Origin: Bigelowiella natans CCMP2755
Taxonomy: Eukaryota > Protista > Cercozoa
Reading direction: 5' to 3'
Length of the DNA: 54,570 nt
Assembly: GCA_000320545.1 (NCBI GenBank)
Contig: ADNK01001314.1
Span: 1-54,570 of the forward strand
Made by a program: the position numbers and the translations under genes. The notes below the pieces were generated by a model. The model searched no databases. It saw only the letters and a list, made by a program, of their open reading frames with translations, and was not told where the DNA came from. This document shows positions 10,711 through 50,070 of the stretch, piece by piece; position 1 is the first letter of the stretch; every line of letters starts with the position of its first letter.

Positions 10711-11626
10711 TAAGTATGATAGTTCTGCTGCGGGGCGACCAATATCAATTACCAACCTCCACGCCACACCTATACACCCCCAACCCCATGCTCTCAAATA
10801 TCGCTCCCCTAGGAGCAGGTTCTATTCCAAATTCTCTTGGGACTGAGCAAACATTTCACTTTATCAGTATCTGTTAAGGTTTATGAGGTTAACCTACGTT
10901 CGTGAAAACTTGATGTAGATTTCATAGATGGCAGCTTTATTGTCAAATGTGCTAGAAGTAATTAGGTAAAACTAGTTGGCTATGCACTGAAGCAACGGTG
11001 CATGCATTATTTCTTGTTAAGAGAGTTTTCAGTGAAGATTATCAAAAGCCCTAAGATTATGTGAGCTGTTACACACTGAATTGCCAATGTTTTTTAAAAT
11101 AAGAATAATAAATGTTTCACTGAAGCCTCAACGCAAATTATATTTTGTAAATCGTGCACATGATTCCATAAGTATGTTGATGTAAATTATCTGGATATTT
11201 CATGTAGCGAAGCTAAGCTAAGCAACAGCAACGTACGTAGCGCATGAGCAGACAAGCACAGTAGAAGACAGTGCGGTATGCTATACATGCGTGCAAATAA
11301 GCAATGTTAAATCAAATGTCACGATGCACATCATATACATACGTACATGCGCAGCATCGCACAGCTTTTGCGCGCCGTAGCGTCCACGGCACTGCGTGCA
11401 TGATTGGTGATATGCAGTCGTCGCCACGCGCGCGCGCGCGCGCACAAACACACTCACACACGCGCGTGACACGCCAGCATCGATCTAGGCTTATGCACGG
11501 CTAGACGGCCACTATGCTACTACGACGACAGAGACAATTGATCGATCGATAGCCATCATTATGTTATTAACACGTGTACGATACTATGTGTACAGAACAG
11601 AAACAATATGTTAACAATAGACACAC

Positions 11627-11716
11627 GTATATATAATATATATAATATATATAATATATATAATACATATAATACATATAATACATATATAATACATATA
11701 ATATGCATAATATATA
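11627..11716. repeat. AT-rich degenerate tandem repeat (TATATAATA / CATATAATA units)
   Basis: Read directly: tatatataatatatataatatatataatatatataatacatataatacatataatacatatataatacatataat. Confidence 0.85.
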
Positions 11717-11807
11717 CTTTGTCTATAGTATTATATATGCTGTGTGCAAAGCACGACATGCTAGACCAAATCTGTATGCATTTTCATGCATGCAACATGT
11801 GATCAAG

Positions 11808-12167
11808 GAAACAAACAGATTCAATTTAAGCGCTGTAGCCGCTGCTTTGCACAGCTACATTAGGATGACCATTGAAAAAATTAAACATTTCATTACATCC
11901 GTCTCATATATGCTGTGTCTATAGTGACGCTACGAAACGCTTGACAAAAAACGAAAAAAGAGCACGTGCAGCGGCAGCGCGCATGCAACGCGCGACATCA
12001 ACGACACAATTCATATGCATTCAAACGCATGAAAAAGATGTGATAGCTAGATAGCAGAGACAAATAAACACAACTTAAACGCCGTAACCGCCGATTTGCA
12101 AAGCTACATTACCAGATTAGGATGACCATTGAACACATTTAATTACTTCATTACATCCGTCTCACAT
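11808..12167. repeat. Imperfect ~100-bp direct repeat, two copies (11808-11909 and 12058-12167)
   Basis: Both copies share gc[t/c]gta[g/a]ccgc[t/c]g..tttgca.agctacatt..ggatgaccattgaa..ttcattacatccgtctca. Confidence 0.85.
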
Positions 12168-45780: not shown

Positions 45781-46412
45781 TATAACACTCCGTCAGCAAG
45801 TCTTGTAGCCTTTTCCTTGCGGGTATAAGGAGGAGGGCATATAATGATCATGCGAGTAGGCGGAATGCTACAGCATGCTTCATTGCTTACCATCTGCTCC
45901 TTGGCCCTCCTCTCCCCATTGCACTTCTCCTTCTCGAGGAGTGATCCCTCACCGTCTCGTCGTCGTCCGTCGTCGGCAGTACGAGACCTAACTGCTTTTT
46001 GACAATCTAATAATCTAGATAATTCCGTACAGAGAAGTTGTCGTTCGGATAAAATTCCCCCCATTTCACTGAATATAGAAATCAAACGATTTCCTGCGAT
46101 TTATCACCTTGCGACAACTCTATTTCATGGAAAATGGGATTGGGCTGCCACCCCTTCCTCAAAACCCAACTCCGACTGCGTCAATAATTGTGCTGCCGCC
46201 AAAAGAACACTCGCGGGTCATTTGATGCGTGTTGGCTCTCCGACAAAGCAGGTTCCATGTCGCTGGGCGGTAGTCTACGCAGGATGAGAGTATTTAGCAC
46301 ATTATTCGGACAACAACACACTCCCCTCAGGTCAATACGAGGGCCGCTCGTATAACTCTTCCATTTTATCACAACAGCCAGCCAAGGATTGGAACTTGGC
46401 GCGCAGCAAAGA
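45781..46412. promoter_or_regulatory. Putative bidirectional promoter region (plastid hydrolase / TH1 gene)
   Basis: About 630 bp between divergent ATGs. AAACCC at 46162. Confidence 0.5.
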
Positions 46413-48836
46413 ATGGGGAACGTTAAAAGTGCTGAAGCAGTCGATCACAGTAAAGCACCAAAGGTGCTGGCAGCTATAAAGGAGTTGGGAGGAGATGATG
46501 ACTCAGAGAGCATCCAGCACGTAGCAGCAGGAAACTTACAGGAGCAAGTAGCCAGCGGGGGTAACAATAACAATACAAAGTGGCAGAAGAGGGTGATTGT
46601 TATCACAACAAAGGTAGGCATGATGCTGATCAATATTCATCAAAAAGCGTTCCCTACTGCGCAGTAAACTTTATGAATATAGTATGTTGATAAGAAATAC
46701 TATGCATAGGCCATCTACTGCTTTGCTGAGGTGTCTTCTTCCTTTGAATGCAAACGAAGAATTGACTTAGCTCTCGTCCGTGCAATCTCCAAATCCACTA
46801 TCTCAGACGAATTTGTACGTCAACTAATCACGTAGATGCCTACCACGTGTTACGTGCAAGCCTTCTCTCAAGCATCATCTATTGAGAGGAACTATGCCTT
46901 TTCCTTCTAAGAAAGTGGCTATCCATTATTTTTTCAATAGGTTTTGCATGTCCCGACTGAATATGATACCCATCTCCGCTGCGAAGATAAAAAAGTCATC
47001 ATCGAGGTGATAGCCCAACATGTAGGAGCGGCTCTCAGGGCAATGTTTCTAAATCGCGTGAGGAGGAGATGAAGGCGTTGAAAAAGAAGGAAGAAGGTGA
47101 CCAGAAAAGAAGGTGGATGGTGACTCAAGGAGACGAAACCATAATACCGAGGGCAGCATCATTCATATCAACATTCAGCGGAAGAATTTAAGACAAATTG
47201 CCACTTGTAAAGGTGAAATGAGATGGTAGATACACCCTTGAAATGCGCGACACCACGGAACATCAATATCAACACTGTAATCATCATGACCACTATCATC
47301 TTTTGCGAAGGTTGCTCTCTCTCTCTCTCTCTCTCTCTCTCTCTCTCTCTCTTCTTCCGTCAGGTTGTCTCTTTAAATATATATATATATATATATATAT
47401 ATATATATATATATACCTATGTTTTTACAACATCGTTTTGCAGCTGCGGCTAGTAAGGACGAAAACCTGGCAGGAGCCAATCTGTTAGCTATCCTGGAAT
47501 CTACCATCGAGGTGTGCATCATCCCTTGCCTTACCACACACCACACACATTATAGATATTATGTGCGTGTGTCTGTTGTCAATAGTGGGATCGGTCGCTA
47601 TCATCAGTATCACCACTATCATATTATATATATATATATATATATATATATATCCATCACAGGGCACATGCTTTGACCGACTAGCACTTAGCCTGTCTCA
47701 GAAAGTGCAGGAAATACTCACCACCTACGCCACGGAAAGGGAATCCGTTATATTCACTGATTATCTGATAAAGGTTTGCACACGATAACGACGATCATAA
47801 TGATGATGACGGCTATCATAGAGTTCATTGATGATGCTTAGCTGTAAATCCTATCGTTTCAGGTCAACAAGAGAGGAAAGGAGCAGAAGCGAATTCTCAT
47901 GCTGACAAATCTTGCGATGTAAGACGATCATGGTGGTGATGGTGCTGATGCTAATCTCTAAGATATAGCAGTATCACCATTGGATTTACTGCTGCTCCCC
48001 CCACGCTCAGGTACAATCTGACTCCCAGCTTCGAGATGAAACGGCGGATTCCAATCCAGCTAATACCGCACATTACCGTGCGGTCATCAAACTCCACCGA
48101 CTTCATCGTTCATGTCATATCGGAGTACGACTACGCGCTCAAGTACGCACATCGGTCCACCTTCATCGATTGCCTGGAGAGAATAAGACGGAGCATCAAC
48201 CCCAACCCCATCACGGTGGCTGCTAGCGGGGATTGCGAGTTCCAGGCCATCTTGATGACGCAGGATAAGATGCACAATTTCTACCAAAGGAACCAACGAT
48301 TGTCTATGCTTTCTCGCAAGATTTCCAGCACGAGAAGGATAGAGGGCGCGGTGAAGCTCTTCCTCCAGAACACCAAACAGCCTTCAAATTCCGATGATAC
48401 AGCAAAAGCTGTCGCTGGTACTGCTGCTGATAGTAAAGAATACGTAAAGAACACATCGTCGATTAAGGCCCCTACTAACGATACTATGCACAAGCGCAAA
48501 ATCACAAGCAGCCGCTCATTAGCCCAATCAACGACGACGACAATAACTCTCAGTAGTAGCTTAAACCAGCAAGCAGCAGCAGCAGTACCAGGTAATGCTG
48601 CTGCTGCTGCTGCTACTACTACTACTACTACTTCTCGTAGTAATAGTAGTGGCATTAGCAGTGAGACAACCGACGCCGCTTATGATGGCATTGTGTCAGC
48701 TGTACCATCTTCCAACTCAAAGCTGTTCAGCCCGGGTACCGACAGCAATCCGGAAAGCGACGTTCGGATCGCTGAGGCCGCAACAAAAGCAACAACTGCT
48801 GGCAACGCCAGTCCTCGCGTGATCAATGTAGACTAA
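46413..48836 (+). CDS. Protein with two myosin-I TH1 (PH-like) domains, N-myristoylation motif and Ser/Thr-rich tail; no motor domain
   Basis: Starts MGNVKS. Repeat 1: KWQKRVIVITTK|AIYCF..CKRRIDLALVRAISKSTISDEF|VLHVPTEYD. Repeat 2: VIFTDYLIK|VNKRGKEQKRILMLTNLAM|YNL..MKRRIPIQLIPHITVRSSNSTDFIVHVISEYD. Both follow the TH1 pattern. Confidence 0.85.
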
Positions 48837-48839
48837 ATT

Positions 48840-50070
48840 AGATCGGGATTATTATTGGAATAACTAGAAATAGATACTAACCCATCGCAACACATCGATC
48901 ATCGTGCTGGAACCTTGCTTCTGAAGCGAGGAGGAGACTCAGACTACAAGAAACTATAATAATGCCTAGATGCTGCGAAGATAAAAGAACAATTATTCCG
49001 CGCCAAAAGGCAATGCGTGATCAATTCAATAGAACAGCTATATCGTATTATATAAAGTCGGTAGTAGCTGACGAGTGTCAGAGCCCTCTCTGCCACTTAT
49101 GAATACAGCAGCGATCGAATGCGACATATATAGAACAAATTTCATCACACCCACGTACACTACCATTATATGTGAACTTTGGCATATAGTTGTCTAGATG
49201 TTTGTGCAATCTAGATATGTATATGACGAGCGTGAAGTGTTGAAAGATTAGATATCATCACAGCAGTTATTATTTGTTCATCGATGCGTGTACCATCCTA
49301 AGGAGGTTGTTACGAGCTCTCTAGTGCTGCATGTATGCCCATGCTATATTATTCCAAATGAGCGATAGATGGAGCGTGCATATATCTAGTGGAGCAAGAG
49401 AGCACTAGAGCATCTGGATGCGCTCTCCGCCATTCATTTATTTGCCTGGTTCGTTGTCTTATATAACTAGACAATAATAGCTAGCTGCTAGCTAGCTAGC
49501 TAGTATATTTGCACACTCCAATCTAGCAATTTTCATCTAAGCCGCCGCACTAGCTAGCTAGCTAGCTAGTAGCGCATGTTGTGACTGTTGTCATTGTTTT
49601 GATAGCAGGCGCCTAGCTAGCTAGCTAGCTAGTAGGCGCTGCTTGCGATGCATTGCATACTAGTATATAGCGTATGTTGACATCGTGTCTCTAGCTAGAT
49701 CTTGAGATCTCTATACTACACTAGATCTAGTATATACGCGCTAAAGCGAGCGAGCTAGCGAGGTTCCATGCACACACGAGAAGTCTCGACTAGTCGATCT
49801 AGCGATGTATACTCATCATCAAGCTAGTAAGTTGCGTAGCGTTCTAGCAGCGTCTCCTAGTTGCAAAACCAATGTAGCACTCTGATGGGCATATGAGCAC
49901 CTATGATGCACTCTAGCACTGTGCATGCTAGCATGCTGTGTGAACATCTCATCCATCTGGTACGTTGCTTGCGTGATGCCCCATGCTAGCATGCATTGAG
50001 TTGCTCACCAGGGTTATACAGGGCTAGACGTACACATCCAGACATGTATTCGCAAATAATAACAGCCTAG
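48840..50070. other. Palindrome-rich convergent spacer 6 (TH1 gene / LMF1)
   Basis: (CTAG)4 at 49488-49503, (CTAG)5 at 49550-49569 and 49613-49632, actagatctagt, gcatgctagcatgc. Confidence 0.85.

Follow-up and report, generated by a model that had tools for sequence, protein, structure and literature searches.

The nuclear genome of the chlorarachniophyte Bigelowiella natans contains, between the 3' ends of converging genes, short stretches of DNA with a composition of their own. These are described here for one entire contig of 54.6 kb (C2423; hereafter the window), which carries genes for 1-deoxy-D-xylulose 5-phosphate (DXP) reductoisomerase, a protein with a glutathione S-transferase (GST) domain, a protein kinase and an alpha/beta-hydrolase, further long open reading frames (ORFs), and six of these stretches, termed islands. 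A preliminary description had noted a switch in composition at six tail-to-tail intervals, which were said to be packed with self-complementary words and poor in CC/GG, and had proposed a termination or boundary signal read by polymerases from both sides. The switch is confirmed at all six intervals. The most distinctive word, CTAG, is shown below to be largely the mark of a recurrent 8-bp insertion, and the islands are read, somewhat more probably than otherwise, as untranscribed spacers that serve as targeted sinks for small insertions, with the palindromes as by-products.

For comparison, 200 kb of other contigs (C1447:1-150000 and C607:1-50000) were added to the window to give a sample of 254.5 kb, and 29 additional loci of about 3 kb each, picked by DNA search with a long interspersed nuclear element (LINE) repeat only, bring the whole set to 343 kb. 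An island is defined as a stretch with an observed/expected (O/E) ratio below 0.6 for CC/GG and above 1.4 for GpC, a joint criterion that replaced a Markov log-likelihood caller, dropped because it caught AT microsatellites. A scar is defined as XXXX-CTAG-XXXX, that is, CTAG flanked by two identical 4-mers. The islands of the window, none of which has a strand, are the following (dinucleotide values are O/E ratios):

10926..12300: island 1 (preliminary limits 11150-12300), CC/GG 0.35-0.39, GpC 1.97-1.99, 3 scars
16751..18125: island 2 (preliminary limits 17000-18000), CC/GG 0.45-0.48, GpC 1.68, 22 CTAG, 6 scars
20501..21375: island 3 (preliminary limits 20600-21300), CC/GG 0.45-0.49, GpC 1.84-1.91, 2 scars
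30301..31400: island 4 (preliminary limits 30500-31400), CC/GG 0.35-0.43, GpC 1.89-2.04, 31 CTAG, 7-9 scars
43576..44350: island 5 (preliminary limits 43600-44300), CC/GG 0.56-0.57, GpC 1.55-1.60, 5 scars in 7 CTAG
48840..50075: island 6 (preliminary limits 48800-50070), CC/GG 0.52, GpC 1.76, 40 CTAG, 17 scars
51401..51925: a weak seventh island-like stretch, beyond the range of the preliminary description, CC/GG 0.54, GpC 1.52, 2 CTAG, no scars

Examined in 500-bp windows, the six intervals have CC/GG ratios of 0.27-0.55, and their palindromic 4-mers are at least doubled. Island by island, CC/GG is 0.35-0.56 (0.97 in the rest of the window), GpC is 1.55-2.04 (1.04), palindromic 4-mers number 94-145 per kb (52 outside) and CTAG 5-32 per kb (1.9 outside). 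The pooled islands have CC/GG 0.46 and GpC 1.81, compared with 0.97 and 1.04 outside, together with CpA/TpG 1.36 (1.18 outside), ApT 1.28 (1.09) and AA/TT 0.72 (0.97), and the G+C content is unchanged, at 43-45% both within the islands and outside. Individual islands vary in character. Island 1 is CTAG-poor, has the strongest dinucleotide regime and holds (CG)n, a TATATATAA array and two LINE fragments, while island 6 is the most CTAG-rich, with (CTAG)n arrays at 49488-49630. On other contigs, islands recur about every 10 kb, making up 13% of the 254.5 kb. Within this sample, both thresholds are passed by 32 of 62 island tiles of 500 bp and by none of 445 non-island tiles. The palindrome-rich windows outside the islands (at 1.4, 5.2, 28.7, 29.3 and 47.4 kb) are nothing more than (AT)n microsatellites. 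The compartment is thus real and sharp, and it extends throughout the genome.

The islands had been taken for a compositional signal rather than a repeat family. This largely stands, since only 6% of island bases align elsewhere in the 343 kb, nearly all of them LINE, and the remainder is unique sequence (island 4 is unique genome-wide apart from one simple repeat); the part to be amended is island 1, with its two LINE fragments. No motif or alignment common to the islands other than the LINE was found across the 343 kb compared. A single dispersed repeat family was rejected as the source of the islands, which do not align mutually.

Most of the palindrome richness arises because the dinucleotide regime shuns homo-dinucleotide steps and prefers GpC, CpA/TpG and ApT. 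After correction for dinucleotide content, CTAG remains in 4.3-fold excess in the islands and AGCT, ACGT and CATG in excess of about 1.4-fold, while TGCA, GCGC, GATC and TCGA fall to about 1.0. Of the self-complementary words named earlier, CTAG and, mildly, AGCT and CATG are thus enriched in their own right, and TGCA, GCGC, GATC and TCGA are not.

The excess of CTAG is tied to a distinctive sequence context. Of the 108 CTAGs in the six islands of the window, 40 (37%) lie between identical 4-mers, as in ACAT-CTAG-ACAT-CTAG-ACAT at 17304 in island 2, and nearly all period-8 repeats in the islands contain CTAG. The 343 kb hold 237 such scars. Among all cores of 0-8 nt in this set, CTAG is the sole one with a flanking-duplicate signature (15% of CTAGs, against a background of 0.8%). 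The next-ranked cores, CCAG and CTGG, are CTAG after a TpA transition; 2-nt and 3-nt variant scars were absent from the 343 kb, and a search for other scar types, with any core of 0-8 nt between 4-bp repeats, returned only CTAG and the forms derived from it by TpA mutation. The 4-mer that is duplicated has C (.62) or A (.28) at its first position and G (.62) or T (.28) at its fourth, giving a CTAG-like target consensus C/A-W-W-G/T (W, A or T); 41% of targets are palindromic, and the commonest are CTAG, CATG, CAAT, ACAT and CAAG. The scar is an 8-bp insertion, composed of a constant CTAG and a 4-bp target duplication. An event of this kind usually makes G|CTAG|C, and neither CC nor GG ever arises at its junctions, which accounts for the excess of GCTAGC (42 times denser in islands) and for the perfect palindromes of 12-24 bp. 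The proposal that the palindromes form a bidirectional signal is therefore not borne out, since their excess is mostly dinucleotide bias and CTAG is an insertion scar.

The scars are distributed very unevenly. In the 254.5 kb, 130 scars fall in 33.7 kb of islands and 12 in the other 220.9 kb. The 136.6 kb of noncoding-like DNA outside islands, composed chiefly of introns and other spacers, contains 6 scars, of which about half are at island edges or in the weak island; for roughly 400 CTAGs this is about the chance level. Scar density is about 70-90-fold higher inside islands. Because an 8-bp insertion in an intron should usually be harmless, a contrast of this size implies that purifying selection alone is insufficient, suggesting that the insertion process is regionally targeted to islands. 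Extrapolation from the 254.5-kb sample would place about 50,000 intact scars in the genome.

A second, unrelated kind of insert shares this confinement. Two fragments of it lie in island 1:

11776..11912, plus strand: LINE 3' end, 5'-truncated, with 93-96% identical copies elsewhere
12060..12175, plus strand: another copy of this LINE 3' end, older than the first, with an 8-bp ATTA-CCAG-ATTA insertion relative to the family consensus

The family has at least 1647 candidate places genome-wide, with many copies 93-96% identical. Every copy in the 254.5-kb sample lies within an island, and nearly all of the 29 loci chosen by LINE alone have a CC/GG trough at or beside the LINE, most of them also bearing scars. 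The copies, of 150-800 bp, show variable 5' truncation and a common 3' end, ...CATCCGTCTCATATA, often followed by (TA)n. The C-terminal part of the LINE ORF gave no match in Pfam; it sits in frames of 1173-1255 aa that also carry RVT_1 (e.g. in C515, C1129 and C3248), and this, with the variable 5' truncation and the common 3' end, identifies the family as a LINE (non-LTR retrotransposon). Rfam and covariation searches on the island repeat returned nothing, and the repeat proved to be the LINE 3' end. The family is young. Its full copies have the ORF of about 1173-1255 aa, and its truncated copies are seemingly confined to islands. A very abundant reverse-transcriptase element was also observed (e.g. 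G000:C1679:161359-161814), with about 100 places of identical score and many intact frames of 1659 aa, which suggests recent or ongoing activity.

The LINE copies record how island DNA changes. Relative to the consensus, they contain 19 insertions of at least 3 bp (103 bp in total) and 1 deletion in 8.35 kb. The insertions include the ATTA-CCAG-ATTA of the window copy (8 bp), TTCA-TATA-TTCA and 4-bp duplications. This is direct evidence that the 8-bp unit has been gained and that islands are lengthening. Inserted bases amount to about 1.2% of the length of island LINE copies, and private substitutions to about 1.6%. Plain 4-bp duplications outside the CTAG class are mildly above expectation in islands (47 against 29 for the ATGC class, about 1.6-fold). 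Growth by general local micro-duplication was considered and rejected, short direct repeats exceeding shuffled sequence by 3.05-fold in islands and 2.85-fold elsewhere.

The genes and transcribed features bordering the islands of the window are the following:

12468..12743, minus strand: DXP reductoisomerase gene, C-terminal exon (Pfam DXPR_C, profile positions 71-115 of 115, E=3.7e-8), with more DXR domains found
18312..18824, minus strand: coding ORF of 170 aa, its end facing island 2
19643..19990, plus strand: GST N-terminal-domain exon (Pfam GST_N_2, E=1e-8) of a gene directed at island 3
31284..31437, minus strand: 3' untranslated region of the kinase gene, about 153 nt, from RNA reads, with the poly(A) site inside the edge of island 4
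31438..32642, minus strand: last exon of the protein kinase gene (Pfam Pkinase, E=6e-56), with RNA contigs showing CT..AC joints
42245..43345, plus strand: coding ORF of 366 aa, ending about 230 bp ahead of island 5
44347..45780, minus strand: alpha/beta-hydrolase gene (Pfam Abhydrolase_6, E=3e-11), its stop codon adjoining island 5
48036..48836, plus strand: coding ORF of 266 aa, ending at the left edge of island 6

For each of the six islands there is evidence of a tail-to-tail position. Island 4 has RNA on both sides, and island 5 has long ORFs on both sides, the right one encoding the hydrolase. The 3' end of the DXP reductoisomerase gene (minus strand) faces island 1 from the right, the GST gene (plus strand) approaches island 3 from the left, and for islands 2 and 6 the call is based on one flank, a long coding ORF facing the island. 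Self-trained codon and dicodon scoring of gene strand was too noisy on short exons and gave way to long ORFs and Pfam. For 20 strong islands, Pfam was searched with ORFs from each strand of each flank, the longest three uninterrupted by a stop; ORFs directed at the islands matched 31 families (about ten genes) and ORFs directed away matched 1. The ORF map is almost everywhere gene, island, reversed gene, and tight divergent gaps have no strong island. An apparent exception was resolved by a hidden minus-strand RAI1-like exon that adjoins the island. This short, unrecognised exon (L010:3759-4049, minus strand, equivalent to C1447 93759-94049) matches the C-terminal part of RAI1/Dxo-type nucleases and demonstrates that ORF maps overlook genes adjoining islands. 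Elsewhere on the same contig, a run of very long same-strand open frames at 67040-84836 (1248, 1378, 1967 aa and more) probably represents a single giant gene, about 18 kb long, with its end at an island.

Transcript ends were mapped at island 4. RNA contigs with CT..AC introns confirm the strand of the kinase gene on its right, in which two RNA runs also define three very short introns (57, 68 and 55 nt; GT..AG on the minus strand) at 32643-33029. The poly(A) site of the kinase lies at 31283-31285, with 106 of the 3'-tag RNA reads carrying poly(T) loose ends before 31283 and 31285. On the left is a weakly expressed plus-strand gene, whose reads stop near 30600. The core between them (about 30600-31283) has an RNA depth of about 0-1.6 and is untranscribed, so that both transcripts end at the island edges. 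The preliminary proposal was to be given up if convergent spacers showed no enrichment of words, if they aligned to a single transposon family, or if they bore no relation to transcript ends, modification or chromatin boundaries, and none of these outcomes was found. Over the kinase transcript, RNA contigs from two runs of 2017 depart from the genome assembly at 31419, 31422, 31654, 32140, 32164, 32560, 32883 and 32931; raw RNA reads of 2026 are mostly without these eight single-base differences, which look like strain differences rather than editing.

Taken together, these data lead us to favour, at somewhat better than even confidence, the reading of islands as targeted insertion sinks. An island would be the DNA that is left untranscribed where two convergent genes reach their poly(A) sites, and this compartment would be the near-exclusive landing place of CTAG insertions, 4-bp duplications and other short insertions, and 5'-truncated LINE copies. 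With about 19 insertions per deletion, the spacers would grow, and palindromic filler inserted at often palindromic targets would produce the long palindromes, GCTAGC and TCTAGA. The agent may be a cut-and-paste element or a nuclease-ligase, cutting with a 4-bp stagger and joining cohesive CTAG ends again; the uniformity of the scar points to such rejoining rather than to error-prone end joining. Its chemistry could be piggyBac-like, with CTAG in place of TTAA, or that of an IS5/Harbinger-like enzyme. By analogy with piggyBac and TTAA, an element with CTAG as its cognate target would carry 4-nt CTAG overhangs; integration with a 4-bp stagger at near-cognate C-W-W-G sites would keep both the target duplication and the carried CTAG, and precise excision at the CTAG borders would then leave XXXX-CTAG-XXXX. 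Targeting might operate through chromatin or transcriptional silence, and any effect on termination or insulation would be secondary. Candidates for the enzyme are genes with the DDE_Tnp_4 domain (Harbinger/IS5-type transposase), which occurs in at least 15 places in the genome (e.g. G000:C777:78413-78880), several of them in open frames of 350-527 aa. The spontaneous indels of B. natans mutation-accumulation lines, 21 over 3,132 generations, include insertions of 4, 4, 5, 7, 11 and 11 bp (bioRxiv 10.64898/2026.01.13.699255), and these multi-base insertions fit an insertion-prone repair background.

Several observations weigh against this reading. A scan for intact elements (target-site duplication, CT...AG and inverted termini) found only CTAG arrays. 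A search for the piggyBac transposase domain (PF13843) gave no match, and is uninformative, having been silent in control genomes too. Sequencing barcodes aside, CTAG is absent from the searched part of the supplementary text of the mutation-accumulation study (bioRxiv 10.64898/2026.01.13.699255), so that none of the indels listed there is a CTAG insertion. Point substitutions in island LINE copies do not drive toward the CC/GG-poor regime, and much of the island composition could therefore reflect selection for function. On contig C607, a convergent gap (40169-41255) has merely a weak island, and a small island (29826-30350) lies seemingly between same-strand ORFs. Gene orientation in the 200-kb sample comes from ORFs and Pfam matches, and transcript ends were mapped at one island.

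The composition is the point at which other explanations enter. When CTAG and 4 bp on each side are masked (13% of island bases), CC/GG 0.55, GpC 1.6, CpA/TpG 1.5-1.55 and TpA 0.72 remain, and scars as the sole cause of the composition are ruled out. The regime must be kept either by CC/GG-free insertion input, plausible given the insertion rate, or by selection. The latter would apply if the islands were termination or insulator domains whose composition (free of homopolymer steps, with purines and pyrimidines alternating, and rich in GpC) is selected, for nucleosome positioning, for heterochromatin or cohesin, or for a polymerase-stopping factor, and in which mobile DNA finds a home. The convergent location, the transcripts that end at both edges of the mapped island, the survival of the regime after masking and GCATG words 5 times denser in islands all agree with this, as does the sizeable H3K9me3/H3K27me3 compartment of B. 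natans (bioRxiv 10.1101/2025.03.17.643675). The LINE substitution flux opposes the regime, which implies maintenance by something other than point mutation. Nevertheless, the islands share no conserved motif or alignment beyond the LINE, their non-CTAG palindromes are near expectation once dinucleotide-corrected, and an insertion input about as large as the substitution input could itself maintain the composition, leaving selected terminators a serious but unlikely account. A variant joins the two ideas in a self-reinforcing boundary, in which a chromatin mark or base modification at convergent ends would recruit a possibly domesticated DDE enzyme under host control that writes CTAG insertions with their duplications, the resulting DNA, free of CC/GG and laden with palindromes, acting as bidirectional terminator or insulator; we give it little credence. 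In the literature, no paper was found that links B. natans to CTAG or palindromic convergent spacers, or that describes such an insertion-written boundary.

Alternatively, the scars could be break-repair products of a host enzyme, topoisomerase II (Top2) or another 4-bp-stagger cutter, concentrated by converging transcription or replication forks, with fill-in of 4-nt 5' overhangs and end joining duplicating 4 bp. What is duplicated measures exactly 4 bp, the preferred targets have dyad symmetry, plain 4-bp duplications are also present in islands, and the location fits the torsional stress expected from converging polymerases. Trapped Top2 does lead to de novo 4-bp duplications via non-homologous end joining in yeast and human tumours (bioRxiv 10.1101/2020.05.03.075358; PMC8795545). 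However, fill-in and ligation offer no source for a filler that is always CTAG, 4-bp duplications other than those with CTAG exceed expectation only mildly (47 against 29), and the yeast Top2 spectrum is a mixture of 1-4 bp whereas the B. natans scars are uniform, so that this origin is improbable. A mutational origin of the composition fares worse. The preliminary description had suggested scars of 5-methylcytosine deamination (CCGG to CTAG), and base modification or a TpA-to-CpA/TpG hypermutation could likewise make the islands a mutational residue. The raised CpA/TpG (1.5) and lowered TpA (0.72) after scar masking, the decay of scar cores mostly to CCAG or CTGG, and T-to-C and A-to-G changes at TpA, which in island LINE copies are 2.3 times as fast as the remaining A/T transitions, are in keeping with a TpA process, which is present in B. 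natans (bioRxiv 10.64898/2026.01.13.699255). Yet the 4-bp duplications flanking the scars exclude CCGG-to-CTAG conversion for these; CT/AG (0.87-1.07) and TC/GA (0.86), the products of CC deamination, are not raised, CpG is undepleted and G+C is unchanged. In the island LINE copies, CC/GG sites mutate least rather than being hypermutable, and substitutions on balance restore CC/GG at the expense of CpA/TpG; a mutation-driven composition was accordingly rejected as unsupported by the LINE substitution spectrum or flux, although the numbers are small. TpA mutation, moreover, cannot yield the GpC excess, and we regard this origin as very improbable. Least credible is selection for cruciforms, also raised in the preliminary description, or for other non-B DNA such as Z-DNA that would stall polymerases. 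Islands contain 124 perfect palindromes with arms of at least 6 nt (about 11 in dinucleotide-preserving shuffles) and 303 hairpins with 7-nt arms (77 in shuffles), and purines and pyrimidines alternate at 58% of steps, compared with 49% outside. But the long perfect palindromes (12-24 bp) consist of (CTAG)n, (TA)n or (CG)n arrays, or of scars whose targets are themselves palindromic, and look like by-products, and local inverted repeats shrink to 1.6 times shuffles when CTAG and simple repeats are set aside, leaving cruciforms without independent support. Arms of 6-12 bp extrude poorly, and cruciforms or Z-DNA form under negative supercoiling, the opposite of the positive supercoils expected in convergent zones.

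Provided that the sample is typical of the whole, a distinct compartment makes up about a tenth of the 91-Mb genome and roughly a third of its intergenic DNA, tied to one gene arrangement and built largely by one precise micro-insertion that is nearly absent elsewhere. It would constitute a natural record of the places in chromatin where a 4-bp-stagger enzyme is active and would allow targeted insertion to be tested against mere tolerance; an integrase or transposase specific for CTAG might also be obtained from it. The islands also offer a sequence-only marker of gene 3' ends and convergent pairs in the poorly annotated Rhizaria, and bear on how compact genomes separate converging transcription.

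Among known systems, the hypermutation at TpA reported for the viral inserts of B. natans (bioRxiv 10.64898/2026.01.13.699255) concerns the same organism and shares the raised CpA/TpG and the favoured TpA transitions in scars and LINE copies. The island effect is about 2-fold, compared with 1000-fold in the viral inserts, and the process accounts for neither the CC/GG deficit nor the GpC excess. The Top2-dependent de novo duplications of yeast top2-FY,RG and the human TOP2A K743N signature resemble the scars in their 4-bp stagger, in the copying of unique sequence through fill-in with end joining, and in a location expected to be under torsional stress. They differ in being a 1-4-bp mix with no constant filler, where the B. 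natans scars always contain CTAG. Kinetoplastid convergent strand-switch regions, with base J and H3.V, are likewise a specialised compartment where converging transcription ends. By contrast with the islands, they are defined by base modification and histone variants, not by composition or insertion scars, and separate polycistronic units rather than single gene pairs.

In form, the scars resemble the excision footprints of cut-and-paste elements, such as those of Tc1/mariner (TA-flanked) and piggyBac (TTAA), in which a constant short filler lies between two short target duplicates, dyad-symmetric targets are preferred, and scars far outnumber surviving elements. The B. natans scar shares their fixed-length duplication and net gain; it differs in its uniformity, set against a mixed end-joining spectrum, and no parent element appeared in the searches made. 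PiggyBac itself excises precisely and leaves no scar, unlike the XXXX-CTAG-XXXX of B. natans, and we know of no superfamily in which CTAG is the filler and 4 bp are duplicated. In eukaryotic PIF/Harbinger elements the duplication is of 3 bp (TWA), compared with the 4 bp of the scars. IS5 produces a 4-bp duplication at 5'-YTAR-3', which includes CTAG (PMC5009759), resembling the C/A-W-W-G/T target and 4-bp duplication in B. natans. Finally, transposon safe havens and the targeting of integration to silent chromatin, as by Ty5 and the chromoviruses, offer a parallel for the compartment as a whole, in that two unrelated kinds of insert are confined to a small non-genic part of a compact genome; in B. 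natans, this part consists of every convergent spacer, about 1 kb in length and recurring about every 10 kb, with a composition of its own.

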